This document shows positions 55,801 through 64,000 of a stretch of DNA of 64,000 nt, piece after piece. The stretch covers positions 16,988,001 to 17,052,000 of the forward strand of contig OZ059896.1 in the NCBI GenBank assembly GCA_964057225.1, in the 5' to 3' direction. The position numbers and the translations under genes are program-made. This DNA is from Auanema rhodensis (taxonomy: Eukaryota > Animalia > Nematoda). Numbering within the stretch: position 1 is the first letter of the stretch; each line of letters opens with the position of its first letter. The notes under the pieces were generated by a model that was not told the origin of the DNA, made no database searches, and was given only the letters and a program-made list of their open reading frames with translations.

Positions 55801-58089
55801 TATTAGAATCAATCTCTAATTCATATTGTGATATAACTGAGATTTCCGAAATTATGCGATGTATACCATGAGATGAAAGATTCTTCAAAATGAAAATGAA
55901 CTTGTTACTTAATTCAGTAATAAATTGATTTGAATATAAATCCGTTTGATATTCGATAACTATATTATATTGATTTTCTGGAGATTTTCCAAAATACCAA
56001 GTTTGCTCATATTTGGAAAAGTTATGATTCACAAAAGAGACATCATGATTATTTGAATCTGAATGATTATCTTGAACAAGAAGAACCTTAAAATGAATTA
56101 TATTAAATATATTATTATTGTTTCAAACATACCTGGAAAAGAGGTAATAACTCTACTCTATCGCCAGGTGATTGTTTAACTAAATCACGAAATGGTACCG
56201 TTGAATGGTTAATAATCTGGTGAATCTGCTGGGATATTCGAAGCAGAAAATCGTGAAAAGTTAATGAAGAATCGATTGATATGAACAGAGGCAATGTATT
56301 CACGAAGCAACCAATTATATCTTGACTTTCTTCATTCCGTACAGACACAGGGAAACCAATACAGAAATCACTAATTAGAGCAACTTTATGAATTAATAGA
56401 GAATAAATAGAAACGAATATAGAAAAATCTGAGCAGTTTGATGGCTCTCGAAGTTTTCTGATAAATTCTGTAAAAGATGCTGGTATTTCTACAATTTTAC
56501 GGCAACCGTGTGATGATTGCAGGTTTCGTCTTGGAAATTCGCTTATAATTTTTTCAGATTTATCACAAAATTTTGTGAGATTGTCTTCCCAATATTGCTT
56601 ATCCTTTTCTTTTATTTCAAAGTTGCACTCATAATACTGTTTACCTATCTTGATATTCTTCTTTTCCAACAAATATTTTAATTGTTTCATAAAAATTGAA
56701 ATTGAAATACTGTCAATAGCTACATGATGAAAATTGAAATATATTTTGAAGTTATGATCGGAATTTCTCAAAAATATTTTCAACGGAATATCAGTTAAGA
56801 TATTCATATTTGTATCAAAATCATTTAAATGTTGATTTATACAAGGTGAAAGAAAACATTCAGTTCCAGATAAAATTGTAAAAGGATAGGAACGTTCAGT
56901 CATACTGTTAAGCGAAGATTCGTAAATAATTCGAAGAATTTTATGATACATAATCAACTTATTAATATAATGAAATAAAGACTTAATAGAATATTGACTT
57001 TGTTGAAAATTTACAGAAAAACTTTCTAAAAACTGTCCTCTTTCATTTGAATATAATTCATTTAAAATCATAAATTGGATTTGTTGATATGATAATTCAT
57101 AGTTTATTTTATCATTCACCTTCAGTGAATTAGTACTATTCATTTCAATGGGTGATGAATGATGTCGATTACATATTGATTTGATATAACAATATAATCG
57201 AAATATTGTATCATATTCTGATGTTATACCAATTTCAATAGGAAACTCTTTCATTAGCAAAAGTTCTAATTGGGTTCGTTGAAGAGAATCCATTCCCATT
57301 CTGATAAATGTTTCATGCTCATTAAAGCTTTTTGTGGAAAATCCAACAATTTCAAAATATGGTAAGAAAAATCCTACATAATTAAAATCTGTTGCCTCCA
57401 AATAGGATGCTTTTAGCTGAGAAGATAATGATAATTCTTCAAAATGTATGTTCTCAACCTTTGCTATAATCATTCCATTTGAATTACAAACAGACAAACT
57501 CACAGAGCTATTACTTCTTTTTATACATTTAATCTCAATTGAACCACAACAGAAAACTGGTAGAATCACCTTATCAATGGATTGAATATGATTAACATCG
57601 ACCGGAAGTGACTTTTCTAACAATATTTTCATCAATATTATTAGGTGTTCATCTTTGAATATGTGATCCTCAGCCACCGAAATTTTTAGGACTCCCTCTT
57701 CATCCTGCTGATAATGGCTAACGACATCGTTAATATTGTCTGTTTCAAGAAGATCACATATAGTTGCAACATCAGTTGAGCATAGAGATAGTGGAGTTAT
57801 CTTATTATCTGAATTACTCATAAGTTCAATTTCTGTTGAAGTTAGGCTTTTGATATTGGCTGCTAAATAATAATTATCATAATATTTCCATAGATAACAT
57901 CTTCTAAAAATAAAAATAAATAAAATAGCAATATCTAAGTTACGTAACGTACTCATTTCTCTCTGGAAGATTACTCAAATCTGATGTTTTGGTTAAATTT
58001 TCTATCAAAAGTTGAAGAGAAAATGTATCAGACATTAATCTGGCATCAGATACGAACTGAATGAAATTATCCCAAAAATCATTATTCAT
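46826..58089 (-). CDS. nrps-1: Nonribosomal peptide synthetase, nemamide NRPS-1-like; about 3,509 aa; (DH-like)-ACP-C-A-PCP-C-PCP-C-C-PCP-A-PCP*-PCP-TE
   Basis: Ten exons (58089-57944, 57903-56133, 56086-55193, 55150-54881, 54829-54651, 54606-54444, 54400-49295, 49251-47527, 47474-47308, 46934-46826) total 10,530 nt, in frame, with GT-AG introns. Carriers GMDSL, GGDSL, GGHSL, GGNSL, GGNSM; C motifs HHVAIDS, HHIIVDG, NHLISDG, HHIVSDA; A motifs TSGSTGIPK/YGLTE/FKTGD/NGK and TSGTTGTPK/YGPTE/YKTGD/QVKIRGHRVEL; TE GASMGG plus GTHSSML. Confidence 0.92.
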
Positions 58090-58505
58090 CTTTTATAACT
58101 ATAAAAGAATTATAACTAAAAAAAAGTAAGTATATATATAATATCTATAAAAAAGCAATATTCAAAGAGAATAGACAGAAAGAGAGGAAGAAACAAAAAT
58201 GAAGAATACTAGATTAGATACAAACATAATATAGATAGTAATTTGCTGATTGCTGCCAATTTCTGCTAAATAAGTTGTAATTACCCTTATTACAATTACT
58301 ATTATGGCAGAACTTTTAAAAATATTTATTTATAACAATATTTGAGACTAAAAACTTTTTTAAAATTGTTAAAAGTTTTACGCGAATTATCAAATGTTAT
58401 TTTCATTTAATACTGACAGAAGAAACAGTACGGTTGTAATATTTACATCATATATACAATTCATTTACAAATTCTTTATTATTAGTTATTATTATCCTTA
58501 CTATT

Positions 58506-58564
<59 letters not shown>

Positions 58565-59082
58565 GAATATATTCTCTTGATCACTGTGTAAATTTTTATT
58601 AAAGGTACTTGTAAACTGTATTTGAAATTTTACAAGGTCTTATTATTCTAAACACACAGCATTTTTATTATTAATTGTACAATGCTCGCAACTTTTTATA
58701 CATACGTTCAAGCATACGTAAATCATCATTATCATTTTAGAATTAATTTTAATTTTATTTTTTACATTGTTTTCTCAAATTTTTTTGATAAATCCAAGCA
58801 TTGAAATTACTGTGGCTAGGCGGCAGAAGTATTTTTGCTCCAATGCGAAAAATCTGCTCCAATGAGAACATTAAATTAAAACGGCGTACGCAGTATTCAA
58901 CTTTGAAGCTTTTGAAAAATTCTTTTTTTCTGTTATTTTTCTATTTGATAATGTCGATAATTTATTATTTTGTTGCAAATTGTTCATGTTTATAAAATTA
59001 TTGTTCGAACTTAATATATTTTCCCTAATATACTTCATTAACATGTTTAGGTTTATTCTGTGGCCAACCTCTTCCTTTTAAA
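58090..59082. promoter_or_regulatory. Divergent promoter region between NRPS and CTR9/CINP-like
   Basis: Head-to-head start codons about 1 kb apart; trans-splice-like TGTTTAG ending at 59050. Confidence 0.45.
58504..58562. repeat. Compound (TCT)n(TAT)n trinucleotide repeat
   Basis: Direct inspection; explains the poly-S/poly-Y pseudo-ORF 58394-58591. Confidence 0.95.
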
Positions 59083-62000
59083 ATGGCCACTATTTTATCA
59101 GCTCAAGAACGAGCCATGAGGAAAGATCCTCCAAAGAATTGTGTAGTTATTCCACTTCGAGATACTCTAGATGATGTAAGTTTTTTATTTTTTAAATTCT
59201 TTTTCCGTTTGATTGTTGAAGGGGGATCTTCTAGGCCTCAGCTCTTAAAACTCTGCGGAGATTTACTATAGAAGTTTGGAATTTAACCCAAAATTGGATT
59301 ACCTGTTCTCGTAATGCTACGAGCATACTTGAAGTCCTTGTTAACAATCGCTTAAAAATATTATATTCTCGTAATTCATACGCGTTTGATGAGTTTTCTT
59401 CGTCAAAATTATCAGACTTCGAGCGAAAAGAGGCCCTTTCCATTATAGTAGATCATGTAACGCTTATAAACAATGATATTGATAAACTCCAACGTATTAT
59501 CGATAAATTTGGAACTGCCTTGACTAGAACTAATGCATATAATGAATTGTATCCAAAAGCTGGTCCTCAAATAACTCATATCTTGACCACTCTTACTGAT
59601 TGTATTCCCGAAGTTATAGATATGTATGAAAAAGAACTCCAATGCAAGCGTGACGGCCTAACAGATATTTCTAAGTTTGAAAATTTCAATGTTTTTTCTG
59701 CTATATGCCTGTCCTTCAAATATGAGCCATTTGTTGATGAGAACTTGATAGCTAAACTTTATGCATTAGTGTCAACTGAAGCATAGCATCGCTATGAATA
59801 AATCTTTATGCAAAACTATCTTCTTTTCTTTTATTAAACAAGAAGCTACAGTTCAATCCATTACAGGAAAGTATCGAGATCAATTTCGAAGATTTGCCAG
59901 ATGGAAATGAGGTACTTCAAATTTTACGAGCCGAGAAGGCTTATCTTCACTATTGGATTCGATTAGGGGTATAGCTTAAATCTTATGTTGAATATTATGC
60001 CAAATATGCTTATAGCTGGAATATTACCGTAAAGGTTTATATGATGTTTTCGTACGTCTCTTGGAAAATTCGGGAAGTGAAGCATCTCTTGATTATGAGG
60101 ATGTTTCAAACGATCAAATGAAAGCCTTAGATATTTTAGCAGCTTATTTCGTTAGATTGGTGAGTTTTATGAGGTTAATATTAGATGAAAGATTCCTTAT
60201 TAAGGCACACAAGGAGAGGGCTAATAAGGAACGTAAAAGGGATTTATTTGCCAAAGCCACCCTTTTATATACTACAGCTGATAAGCTGAAAATGTACGAT
60301 ACAGACCATTTGACAGGAAGAGCTTACTTTTGTCTCGTGGAAGGAAAGCACAACAAATTGGACTCTGCTGCGCAGCAGTTTAATTTCGTTTTAAAGCAGG
60401 TATTCTATCGGACAACATGTTTTTTTACTTTAAGTATTGCTTTAGAATTCTAACGATATTGCTGCTATGATGGGAATGGCATGTATTTCTTTTAATAAGA
60501 AAGATTATAAAACTGCTCTTTATTACTATAAAAAAGTAATTTTGTCGCCGCTTGGAAAATTTAACTGATATTTGTATTACAGTGTCTAAGACAAAAACCC
60601 ATAGGACCCCCGGATTTTCGGGTTGGAATAGGTTATTGCTTAGCCAGAATGAACAAATATGAAAAGGCTCGGTATTCGTTTTTATATTGTTTTAAATTCT
60701 ATGTTACTATTTTCAGAATTGCTTTTGAAAGGGCACTAGAAATTCAAGCAACTCATGTATCAGCTCTTACTGCTCTCGCAATCATGGATCTAAACGAATA
60801 TACTGAGCACTCATTACAAGTACTGATTTTGTTTTTGTATAGCTGTGTTAAATATTTAAATTTCAGTTAGCCGTTCACAGACTTAGTGCTGCATATAAAT
60901 TAGAGCCTGAGAATCCTGTAGTTTTAGTTCATCTTGCCAACCACTTTTTCTATAGAGAGGTTTAGAATTCTTTCAAATTATTTAGAATTCTTCTTTATTT
61001 AGGATCGTGCTCGTGCTGAACAACTTGCTTGGCATGCTATGTCAATTGCCGAGAGTGATCAAATTCGGGCTGAAGCGTGTTTCCAGCTGGCGCGTTGTTT
61101 TCACTGTAATAAGGATTATGACAAAGCCTTCAAGGTACTTCGAAAAATCCAAATTTTGATGGACATTTTTCTTTGTAGTATTATTACCAAGCTACAACTT
61201 TGAATCATCCCTCCTTCATTTTACCTTATTATGGTCTTGGTCAGTTACATATTCAACGTGGTGAATATAATCAGGTATAATATATAATTATATATAGATC
61301 GTGTTAATTGTCATTTTTTGAGGCTATTCATGCTTTTGAAAATATTTTGAAAGTTCATCCGAACAATACCGAAACTTTGAAAATAGTAGGATCACTTTAT
61401 GCTCATTCCGAACAAGATAATCATGAAAGAAGACAAAAAGCTCGTGATGCATTCGCGAAATATTTGGCAGTGTTCCCTGATGATATTGAAGCATTGATTG
61501 ATATGGCTCAATTATTGGAATATGTTGATCCTCAGGTACGTTTATTCATTTTGCTTGCACTGATAGTTTTTTTCTTCTATAGAAATCATTGAATTATTAT
61601 GAACATGCTGTTGAGTTATTATCCAAAGAAGAAATTGATTCGCCTGCTGAAATTTTAAACAACATGGGATCTCTTCATATGCATTTAGGAAATTTCAAGC
61701 AAGCTTTGGAGTGCTATGCGGATGCTGAGCATCGTCTTCTGGTTTATAAAAATTCCAAATTATCTAAAACATTTTATATTCAAATTTAGATGGAAAATGC
61801 CATGGAAACTTCAGATGGTCAAAATGTTTTACTAACTATTCGTTATAACAAAGGAAGATGTTATGAGCATATGTGTCTTTTTGATGATGCTGCTGACATT
61901 TACAAAGGAATTTTAAAAATCAGAGAAGATTATATTGACTGTGCGTTTCAGCTTCTTATCGCATTTTAAATAACCCTTTTCAGGCATGATTCGCTTAGGT

Positions 62001-64000
62001 TGTCTTGCTAGAGATCGGGGGCAAATTTATGATGCCTCTGTTCAATTCAAGGAAGCAATGTCAATAAACCCCGGTCATGCTGACGCCTGGACTTTAATAG
62101 GTAATTTGCATATGGCAAAACATGAGTAAGTTGATTTATAATTCAACATGTTTTGAACAATTTTTTATAGATGGGGACCAGCCCAAAAGAAGTTTGAGCA
62201 CATTCTCAAACTTGGCGATCTCAAGCACGATGCCTACTCACATATAGCCTTAGGAAATATCTGGTTGGAATCTTTATTCAGTCCAACAAGAGATCGTCGT
62301 AACGTATCATTTTTATATTCCTGTTTGCTTTGTTAATTTTCTGTATTTAGGATGAAAAATACATGGATCGTGCTATCAGCATGTTCGCTAAAGCTATCAA
62401 AATTCAACCAAGAAATATGTGGGGAGCAAATGGTTTAGGTTGTGTATTAGCTTTGAAGAAACAATGGTTAGAAGCTAGAGATATCTTTACTCAGGTATTT
62501 TTTCATTAATTGTTTAACTTATCGTTATTTATGTTAGGTTCGTGAAGCAACAGCTGAATTTTTTGATGTTTGGATCAACATTGCTCATGTATATATGGAA
62601 ACTAGACAATACGTTCCAGCTATCCAAATGTAAAGTTCTCTCTTCGAAATTTAGGCAAGGTTTTTCTTATAGGTATGTCAATGCTATGAAGAAATTCGGC
62701 CGAGAAAGTGATTCTCTTATGCTTATGTATTTAGCTAGAGCCTACTTCCGAGCTAGCAAGCTTCAGGAAAGTAGAGAAACTCTAGAGAAAGCTATCTTTG
62801 AAGCTCCAGATAACGTGCAAATCAAGTTTAACCATTCTTTCATTCTAAAAAAAATGGCTAAAGAAACGTTGGAAGACGTAAAATCCACAACTAATATGGT
62901 CAATGGAGCTATCGAGGATTTACGCACCGCTGAACGGTTTAGCTATCTGTCCATCCCTTGGTTTATTTCTTTATTTCAGTGTTTTAACTTACATTAGCAA
63001 TAACAAAGATGATAGCTTAAGCGGTGCTAGATATATATCACGTACATCAGCTGGAGAAGAAGCTCGTGAATGTAGGGATTTGTTGAAACAAGCTCAAACA
63101 TATCTTGCTCGCGCCCAGCAGCAAGACGAAGAGGAAAGTCGACTCAGAGCAAAACAAGAAGAAGTCTGTGATTTTATATTTTTCTTTCATTGTTTCTTAA
63201 TTGCAGGAGCGCTTATCGTTAATGCGCAAGATGCAAGAGGAACAACAAGAAAAAGAGGCCGAGCGATTACGAAAGGAAGATGAATTACGGTCTCTACGTC
63301 ATACTTATGTCAGTATGACAAAGGATATCTTGAAAATGCCAGAGGTGAGATATCATCCAACTATTCAACTCATATATGGTTGTAATTTTTTTCAGATTGT
63401 TGAAGAAAAGAAATCCAGAGGATATGGAAAGAAAAGGAAAGGAGGCGCCGATGAGGGCGAATTTGTTAACGACAGCTCTGATATGGGAGATTGGCAGGGT
63501 GAAGAAGGAGGAGAGCGAAAGGAAAGGAAGAAGAAAGACGTACTATATATATCTTATTTTCGTGGTGGTATAAATTCCTACTTTTCAGAAAGAATCCAAG
63601 AAAGCTTCTCGTAAACGTAGAGAAAAAAGAGAAAGAGGTGGAGGTAGTGGATCAGATCAAGATGATCGTAAAGCTGATAGACGAAAAAAGAAGGAGGAAG
63701 CTGCTGCTCGAAAAGCTGAATCTAAAATGTCAAAACAAAGTGCCAAATGTATGCATAAATTTGGATATTATCAAGCATACAAATTCATTTTGCAGTTAAA
63801 AGTCGTGCTTTCCTTCCATCAGACGAAGATTCTTCGGATGACAATGCTCCAGGACCTTCAGAACCAAAAGATGACTCAGCTGCAGCTGAATTTGAAGATA
63901 GTCCACCTCGGGCTCCAATCAGTAGCAGTGATAGTGACGATAGTGTACCAAAACCACGAAAGAAGAAGGTATTAGTAATGAAAAGTATATCCAAGTATTC
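59083..64000 (+). CDS. ctr-9: PAF1-complex TPR subunit CTR9 (continues beyond the window)
   Basis: IPLRDTLDD|[20 protein letters not shown] (cf. [23 protein letters not shown]), [10 protein letters not shown], many TPRs, [26 protein letters not shown], acidic/basic C-terminal tail. Confidence 0.95.
59235..59786 (+). CDS. CINP-like coding terminal exon nested in CTR9 intron 1; spliced to the shared exon 59083-59175 it gives a ~214-aa protein
   Basis: 552-nt open frame starting right after TCTTCTAG (phase 0), 59 nt after the exon-1 donor. [47 protein letters not shown] resembles CINP (..WHNLILKW..MYRKELLLKR..YLSMWLHQPYVES). AATAAA at 59797-59802. Confidence 0.75.
   Translation, partial: ASALKTLRRFTIEVWNLTQNWITCSRNATSILEVLVNNRLKILYSRNSYAFDEFSSSKLSDFERKEALSIIVDHVTLINNDIDKLQRIIDKFGTALTRTNAYNELYPKAGPQITHILTTLTDCIPEVIDMYEKELQCKRDGLTDISKFENFNVFSAICLSFKYEPFVDENLIAKLYALVSTEA
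59797..59802 (+). terminator. Poly(A) signal for the nested CINP-like exon
   Basis: AATAAA 10 nt after the TAG, followed by a T-rich tract (59820-59835), upstream of the CTR9 exon-2 acceptor at 59866. Confidence 0.55.

Follow-up and report, generated by a model that had tools for sequence, protein, structure and literature searches.

The first intron of the CTR9 gene of Auanema rhodensis contains an exon that, as profile and structure comparisons support, encodes an orthologue of CINP (CDK2-interacting protein) and very probably takes its start codon from the first coding exon of CTR9 itself. We consider it very probable that the locus is a single SL1-trans-spliced unit, from which two unrelated proteins are made with one start codon by means of an alternative terminal exon. 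The sequence analysed, hereafter the window, is a stretch of 64,000 nucleotides of contig OZ059896.1 (positions 16,988,001 to 17,052,000, forward strand), and all coordinates refer to positions within it.

Organization of the shared locus

An earlier note, made from the letters of the window, had placed CTR9 exon 1 at 59083–59175 (31 codons), ending at a phase-0 GTAAGT donor with two phase-0 acceptors available, at 59235 and 59867. All of these coordinates proved correct, and the nested layout is confirmed in A. rhodensis as follows:

59049–59082, plus strand: SL1 trans-splice acceptor AG and 32-nt 5′ UTR of the shared exon 1, from the loose end of an RNA contig (CCAAGTTTG)
59083–59175, plus strand: shared coding exon 1, 31 codons, with its ATG at 59083 and the motif IPLRDT, ending in phase 0; from sequence and an RNA joint
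59176–59234, plus strand: proximal intron of 59 nt, GTAAGT...TCTAG, very likely removed in the CINP mRNA; no RNA depth at 59182–59234
59235–59786, plus strand: CINP-orthologue exon, 183 codons and a stop at 59784–59786; from sequence, homology, a structure model and contigs of four runs
59787–59813, plus strand: 3′ UTR of the CINP mRNA, with AATAAA at 59797–59802 and the transcript end near 59813; from contig ends
59814–59866, plus strand: 53-nt spacer from the intronic poly(A) site to the distal acceptor TTACAG, within CTR9 intron 1
59867–64000, plus strand: CTR9 exon 2 (59867–59967) and later exons, continuing beyond the window; from RNA joints, translation and tblastn with the Cylicocyclus CTR9 prediction (P0027)

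The peptide of exon 1 carries IPLRDT, a conserved N-terminal CTR9 motif. When exon 1 is joined to the distal acceptor (TTACAG/GAA), the result is the N-terminus of CTR9 in a frame that stays open through all later RNA-defined exons, CTR9 intron 1 then spanning 59176–59866 (691 nt). Joined to the proximal acceptor (TCTAG/GCC), the same exon opens the nested frame, for a product of 214 aa. As the earlier note had read it, this frame is a stop-free exon of 183 codons followed by AATAAA, and a T-rich stretch lies 3′ of the end of the nested transcript. The 59-nt proximal intron had been described there as being of the usual size; the remaining CTR9 introns, as defined by RNA joints, skip 43–49 nt, so that this one is slightly long.

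The nested frame exceeds chance expectation. When the 691-nt intron was shuffled 20,000 times, the longest run of open codons was 157, short of the 183 observed, and the one-frame chance of such an open frame at the composition of the intron is P ~2e-6. Extension of the frame in the 5′ direction is blocked by an in-frame TAG immediately before 59235, and of its 183 codons the sole ATG is codon 130, in agreement with the earlier observation that none occurs until the last ~55 codons.

The spacer between an NRPS gene and CTR9 contains a separate low-complexity open reading frame (58394–58591), in which Ser and Tyr codons occur in runs and over which the RNA depth is zero.

Transcripts of the window

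The RNA evidence comes from four runs (X1–X4) of one study in the form of assembled contigs, from which levels, true ends and rare forms are not derivable. The runs were taken to be RNA because GT..AG introns are missing from their contigs, which also bear the tail of SL1. All four runs contain the joint 59175→59867, with GT..AG ends. At the 5′ side, the 3′ end of SL1 is joined at about 59049–59051, 32 nt upstream of the ATG, in the form of a loose end (CCAAGTTTG) in X1 and X3 which, together with the genomic AG, we read as the 3′ end of the nematode leader. None of the four runs showed RNA depth across 58000–58984. With the SL1 site near the ATG and the upstream 1 kb silent, the promoter and outron of the shared unit are invisible in these RNA data.

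Every run also contains a separate nested contig of 586–608 nt, extending from 59235 (record position 30) to 59813, 59813, 59808 or 59791. The longest of these terminate 11 nt 3′ of AATAAA; a poly(A) tail was not seen as a contig loose end. Between 59182 and 59234 the RNA depth is zero, and the depths of the bins are those predicted from the nested contig alone.

The joint 59175→59235 is absent among the 15 joints listed individually, beside which 8 more are counted. Reading of the three frames places seven CTR9 introns among the latter (four in 61984–62673, one at 62935→62979 and two in 63163–63539), which leaves one joint over; tblastn was unsuitable for this count, as its alignments run straight through short introns. 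Each nested contig begins with 29 letters before 59235, and a piece of the same 29-letter length is what the CTR9 contig has on the tail of exon 1 (‘side 29’). In X2 and X4 no contig lies only partly on the stretch, so the 29 letters of the nested contigs come from the stretch itself, where exon 1 is the sole upstream sequence with RNA depth. A common piece of 29 letters is as expected where a k=31 assembly graph forks at one node. From this prefix, the zero depth of the intron and the count of unlisted joints, with which the orthologues agree, we infer that the joint 59175→59235 very likely exists.

The same data bear on whether the nested exon could be an independent gene, with its own promoter or an SL site at 59235 and another start codon. 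Nematode genomes often contain genes nested on the same strand, trans-splicing to internal acceptors is frequent there, and the CINP gene of Heterodera trifolii does have its own first exon. In the window, however, a TAG stands directly upstream of 59235 and an in-frame ATG is lacking before codon 130. Among the contig loose ends no spliced leader was seen at 59235 or at 59867, though one was reported at 59049; moreover, the 29 upstream letters with which the nested contigs begin exceed the 22 nt of a leader and are located on the stretch, no other upstream sequence is expressed, and the orthologues bear the CTR9 exon-1 peptide. An independent gene is, on this evidence, very unlikely, and the proposal that the nested frame needs exon 1 is upheld by the lack of a usable ATG, the contig prefix and the way in which the orthologues begin.

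The word-depths of the CINP and CTR9 branches are 17:42, 37:108, 23:44 and 34:96 in the four runs, i.e. approximately one-third of CTR9 for the CINP contig, contig depth being a poor gauge of level. Two further observations concern the contigs. In X2 and X4 the depth of the exon-1 contig (58985–59181) is approximately 1.5 times the sum of the CINP and CTR9 branches, and in X1 and X3 it approximately matches that sum; the excess could be short-contig noise or could reflect a third exon-1 product. In X1 alone, a contig enters CTR9 at 63427 after 255 unrelated letters (beginning TTAATCAAGGACGCG), perhaps through chimeric assembly or perhaps as an alternative piece from upstream.

Identity of the nested product

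The earlier note had recognized the nested product as CINP-like from short sequence patterns and total length, and this identification is borne out by both profile and structure. An exhaustive HMMER search recovered 26 nematode homologues of the nested body. The profile of these 26 members, which include the window sequence, matched human CINP in the PDB with E=3.7e-19 (72 bits), profile positions 11–183 (173 of 196 positions) being aligned to CINP residues 21–197; the second-best match in the PDB was IST1, with E=0.002. Searched as a single sequence, the 183 aa retrieved nothing in Pfam, in the PDB (phmmer) or in a word-indexed protein search. A word-indexed profile search returned five proteins and missed C. 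elegans, which was retrieved when the C. angaria segment was used as the query.

The AF2 model of the nested exon product consists of five helices, with a mean pLDDT of 94.4. Its best Foldseek match is the CINP crystal structure 8cih_A (‘FL CINP’), with TM values of 0.77/0.75 and a probability of 1.00. All of the first 10 ranks are CINP or 55LCC entries, the named CINP chains 8cih_A, 9gwj_B and 8rhn_C being at ranks 1, 3 and 4. Protein language-model features match clusters of both CINP-like and CA109-like proteins, and a weak match to the Pfam CA109-like family was obtained for two of the 26 members (E=0.0066). In the profile search of the PDB, no chain named C1orf109 was found up to E=10, though the PDB has such entries; on this ground the nested product is nearer to CINP than to C1orf109/AIRIM. 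Together, these results support the conclusion that the nested exon encodes a CINP orthologue.

Human CINP partners C1orf109 and the ATPases AFG2A/AFG2B (SPATA5/SPATA5L1) in the 55LCC complex, which acts in pre-60S maturation (PMC9004343, PMC11055677, PMC12019325). By analogy with this human work, nematode CINP may likewise bind C1orf109 and AFG2 ATPases and take part in pre-60S maturation.

Conservation of the layout in nematodes

The earlier note had proposed a search of other nematode ctr-9 first introns, and a CINP exon was indeed found between CTR9 exons 1 and 2 in six loci:

C. elegans (L002, chromosome III, BX284603.4): exon 1, 72 nt; proximal intron, 161 nt; from the CINP stop to CTR9 exon 2, 112 nt
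C. angaria (L001): exon 1, 48 nt; proximal intron, 103 nt; from the CINP stop to CTR9 exon 2, 100 nt
Steinernema carpocapsae (L003): exon 1, 39 nt; proximal intron, 63 nt; from the CINP stop to CTR9 exon 2, 43 nt
Logan contigs L005, L006 and L007: nested layout read directly

All six loci read show a phase-0 exon 1, then a CINP exon without a plausible start of its own, a stop and CTR9 exon 2. Hexamers of the poly(A) type were noted 3′ of the CINP stop in L001, L002, L003 and L007. The proximal acceptor, which is off-consensus in the window, follows the consensus in C. elegans (TTTCAG) and C. angaria, so that weakness of the proximal site is not a feature of the mechanism that has been conserved.

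Predicted proteins in the databases reflect the same arrangement in two ways. Short predictions, composed of a CTR9-type exon-1 peptide and CINP, exist for Cylicostephanus (P0002), Parelaphostrongylus (P0007), Gnathostoma (P0012) and Parascaris (P0016, named ‘CTR9-like’). Chimeric predictions, in which exon 1 and CINP are followed by the rest of CTR9 (545–1324 aa), exist for C. angaria (P0004), Dictyocaulus (P0009) and Thelazia (P0013), and further chimeras of this composition for Pristionchus (P0015), Cylicocyclus (P0027) and Enterobius (P0036). In the annotation of S. carpocapsae, exon 1 is assigned to the CINP gene and CTR9 is begun at an internal Met. Given the spread over spirurids, steinernematids and rhabditids/strongylids, and taking the standard nematode phylogeny, the arrangement is probably of early Rhabditida age.

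Taken at face value, the chimeric predictions of six species (545–1324 aa), in which the CINP-like body stands between exon 1 and the remaining CTR9, would describe a single CTR9 protein with a CINP-like internal cassette. In every locus read, however, a stop ends the CINP frame and AATAAA comes after it. In the window, the CINP contigs cross this stop into the poly(A) region while the CTR9 contigs skip the entire exon, and the eight unlisted joints are accounted for without any joint from within the CINP exon to 59867. To our knowledge, human CTR9 has no CINP-like insert. We therefore regard a single fused protein as extremely unlikely, and read the chimeras as two products of an alternative terminal exon merged in prediction.

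Conservation also bears on whether the exon is a non-functional by-product, i.e. a cryptic terminal exon that yields a truncated and meaningless CTR9 isoform. Intronic polyadenylation does often make truncated products, and databases do call this one ‘CTR9’. Such a reading is hard to reconcile with a 183-aa body that different nematode clades have preserved and whose sequence and fold both show homology to human CINP, or with a CINP contig whose word-depth, a rough measure, reaches approximately one-third of that of CTR9 in the four runs; we give it next to no credence, and retain a functional CINP orthologue as the product of the proximal branch.

The cyst nematode exception

In Heterodera trifolii (L004:5001–5912), CINP and CTR9 are arranged in tandem with separate first exons. 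That of CINP has 11 codons, and the ATG of CTR9, whose exon-1 motif is IPLKNS, is found 150 nt past the CINP stop. The CINP first exon of Heterodera ends in ...SVLKNSS, and the corresponding Globodera protein has ...SMPKNTS; both resemble the CTR9 sequence IPLKNSA, which reads ..IPLKNSAEE in Heterodera. This four-residue match suggests that cyst nematodes may have undone the sharing through duplication of exon 1. The nested layout is retained in L007, in which both CINP and CTR9 exon 1 appear tylenchid-like. The 150-nt spacing in Heterodera could be compatible with an operon. In the window, the CINP frame lacks a separate start codon and no leader was seen at either 59235 or 59867, contrary to an operon, in which every cistron starts at a separate codon and the downstream one receives a leader.

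Proposed expression of two proteins from one start codon

In the mechanism that we propose, exon 1 (59083–59175) would provide the AUG and 31 residues to both products. Splicing of its donor to the proximal acceptor at 59235, followed by cleavage and polyadenylation about 11–15 nt past AATAAA, would yield the 214-aa CINP orthologue. Splicing of the same donor to the distal acceptor at 59867 would excise the CINP exon and its poly(A) site as intron 1, and would yield CTR9, a component of the PAF1 complex. The choice of splice site would presumably compete with cleavage.

The contribution of the shared peptide to CINP appears to be small. When C. elegans isoform d was modelled, its exon-1 residues came out with pLDDT values of 43–53 and no secondary structure, the helical bundle beginning at the exon junction. 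The length of exon 1 ranges across species from 13 to 31 codons, and Heterodera CINP has a short, divergent replacement. Exon 1 may give CINP mainly a start codon and a disordered tail, its motif being kept for the sake of CTR9.

Beyond a mere accident of history, a regulated switch can also be imagined, along the lines of the PAF1C feedback loop that the earlier note thought conceivable, in which competition between polyadenylation and distal splicing would set the CINP:CTR9 ratio in a manner responsive to PAF1C, CTR9 thereby tuning its own output against that of a 60S-maturation and replication factor. We consider such regulation doubtful; were it real, it would couple transcription elongation capacity with ribosome production.

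Previous annotation and implications

The earlier note knew of no description of the arrangement. This holds for the literature searched, in which we found no account of a shared-exon arrangement for these genes and, among the papers listed, none containing both CINP and ctr-9. It does not hold for the databases of C. elegans, where a 206-aa product having its start in common with the 1150-aa CTR9 goes under the names ‘isoform d of RNA polymerase-associated protein CTR9’ and ‘RNA polymerase-associated protein CTR9’. The C. elegans structure is already annotated, under a misleading name. B0464.2, which we take to be the cosmid name of C. elegans ctr-9, was found in the literature in an unrelated context only. 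The 55LCC literature checked mentions neither CTR9 nor C. elegans; that CINP-like proteins exist in C. elegans is reported by Ni et al. 2022, the gene not being given (PMC9004343).

The nematode CINP orthologue is, in consequence of these annotations, hidden under the name of CTR9, as isoform d in C. elegans and fused into the CTR9 predictions of at least six other genomes, while in Steinernema the CINP annotation took exon 1 and left the CTR9 prediction truncated. Nematode annotation pipelines can now fix this recurrent CTR9/CINP error. Work on 55LCC gains a target in the worm, where the CINP exon is intronic for CTR9 and so separately mutable. Conversely, ctr-9 reagents that cover exon 1 may affect CINP too, as for instance the RNAi fragment that covers the initial 1000 bases of the coding sequence (PMC9321568). 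For a comparison of nested with tandem arrangements, a naturally ‘resolved’ state is available in the cyst nematodes. More generally, the locus is a clean and long-conserved example of unrelated conserved proteins that have a start codon and an N-terminal peptide in common.

Comparison with known systems

A close counterpart of the A. rhodensis locus is C. elegans ctr-9. Both loci have an ATG exon, annotated as shared in C. elegans and very probably shared in A. rhodensis, a phase-0 GTAAGT donor, a CINP exon without a plausible start of its own, a stop and poly(A) signals, and isoform d (206 aa, P0042) is the orthologue of the window product, with 42% identity to its 183-aa body. The differences are of size, exon 1 having 24 codons versus 31, the CINP exon 182 versus 183 and the proximal intron 161 versus 59 nt, of the proximal acceptor, which matches the consensus in C. 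elegans, and of name, isoform d being designated an isoform of CTR9 rather than CINP.

Human CINP (PDB 8cih, 8rhn, 9lgo, 9gwj) shares with the window product the helical bundle fold, the pattern W-N-L..W in helix 1, and MY.KEL..KR ... [HY]EP[FY]V[DE] near the C-terminus, and is of similar length (212 aa versus 214 aa), whereas identity is approximately 17%. The human gene is standalone and has its own first exon, whereas in most of the nematodes seen here CINP starts with the residues of CTR9.

Alternative terminal exons with intronic polyadenylation form a well-known class of mechanism, and the ingredients of the present case can be found in several classical loci. In the nematode cholinergic locus cha-1/unc-17 and in unc-60A/B, one promoter serves two proteins by means of a common first exon, with a gene nested in the first intron. 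In cha-1/unc-17, however, the shared exon is non-coding, whereas CTR9 and CINP share 13–31 coding residues, the conserved CTR9 motif included. In unc-60, the shared exon contributes the initiator Met only and the products are paralogues, whereas those of CTR9/CINP are unrelated. In calcitonin/CGRP and the IgM heavy chain, as in the present layout, a distal 3′ splice site is the alternative to a proximal one that has a poly(A) site to itself. These genes make variants of related products; in CTR9/CINP, each branch leads to a complete protein of a separately conserved family.
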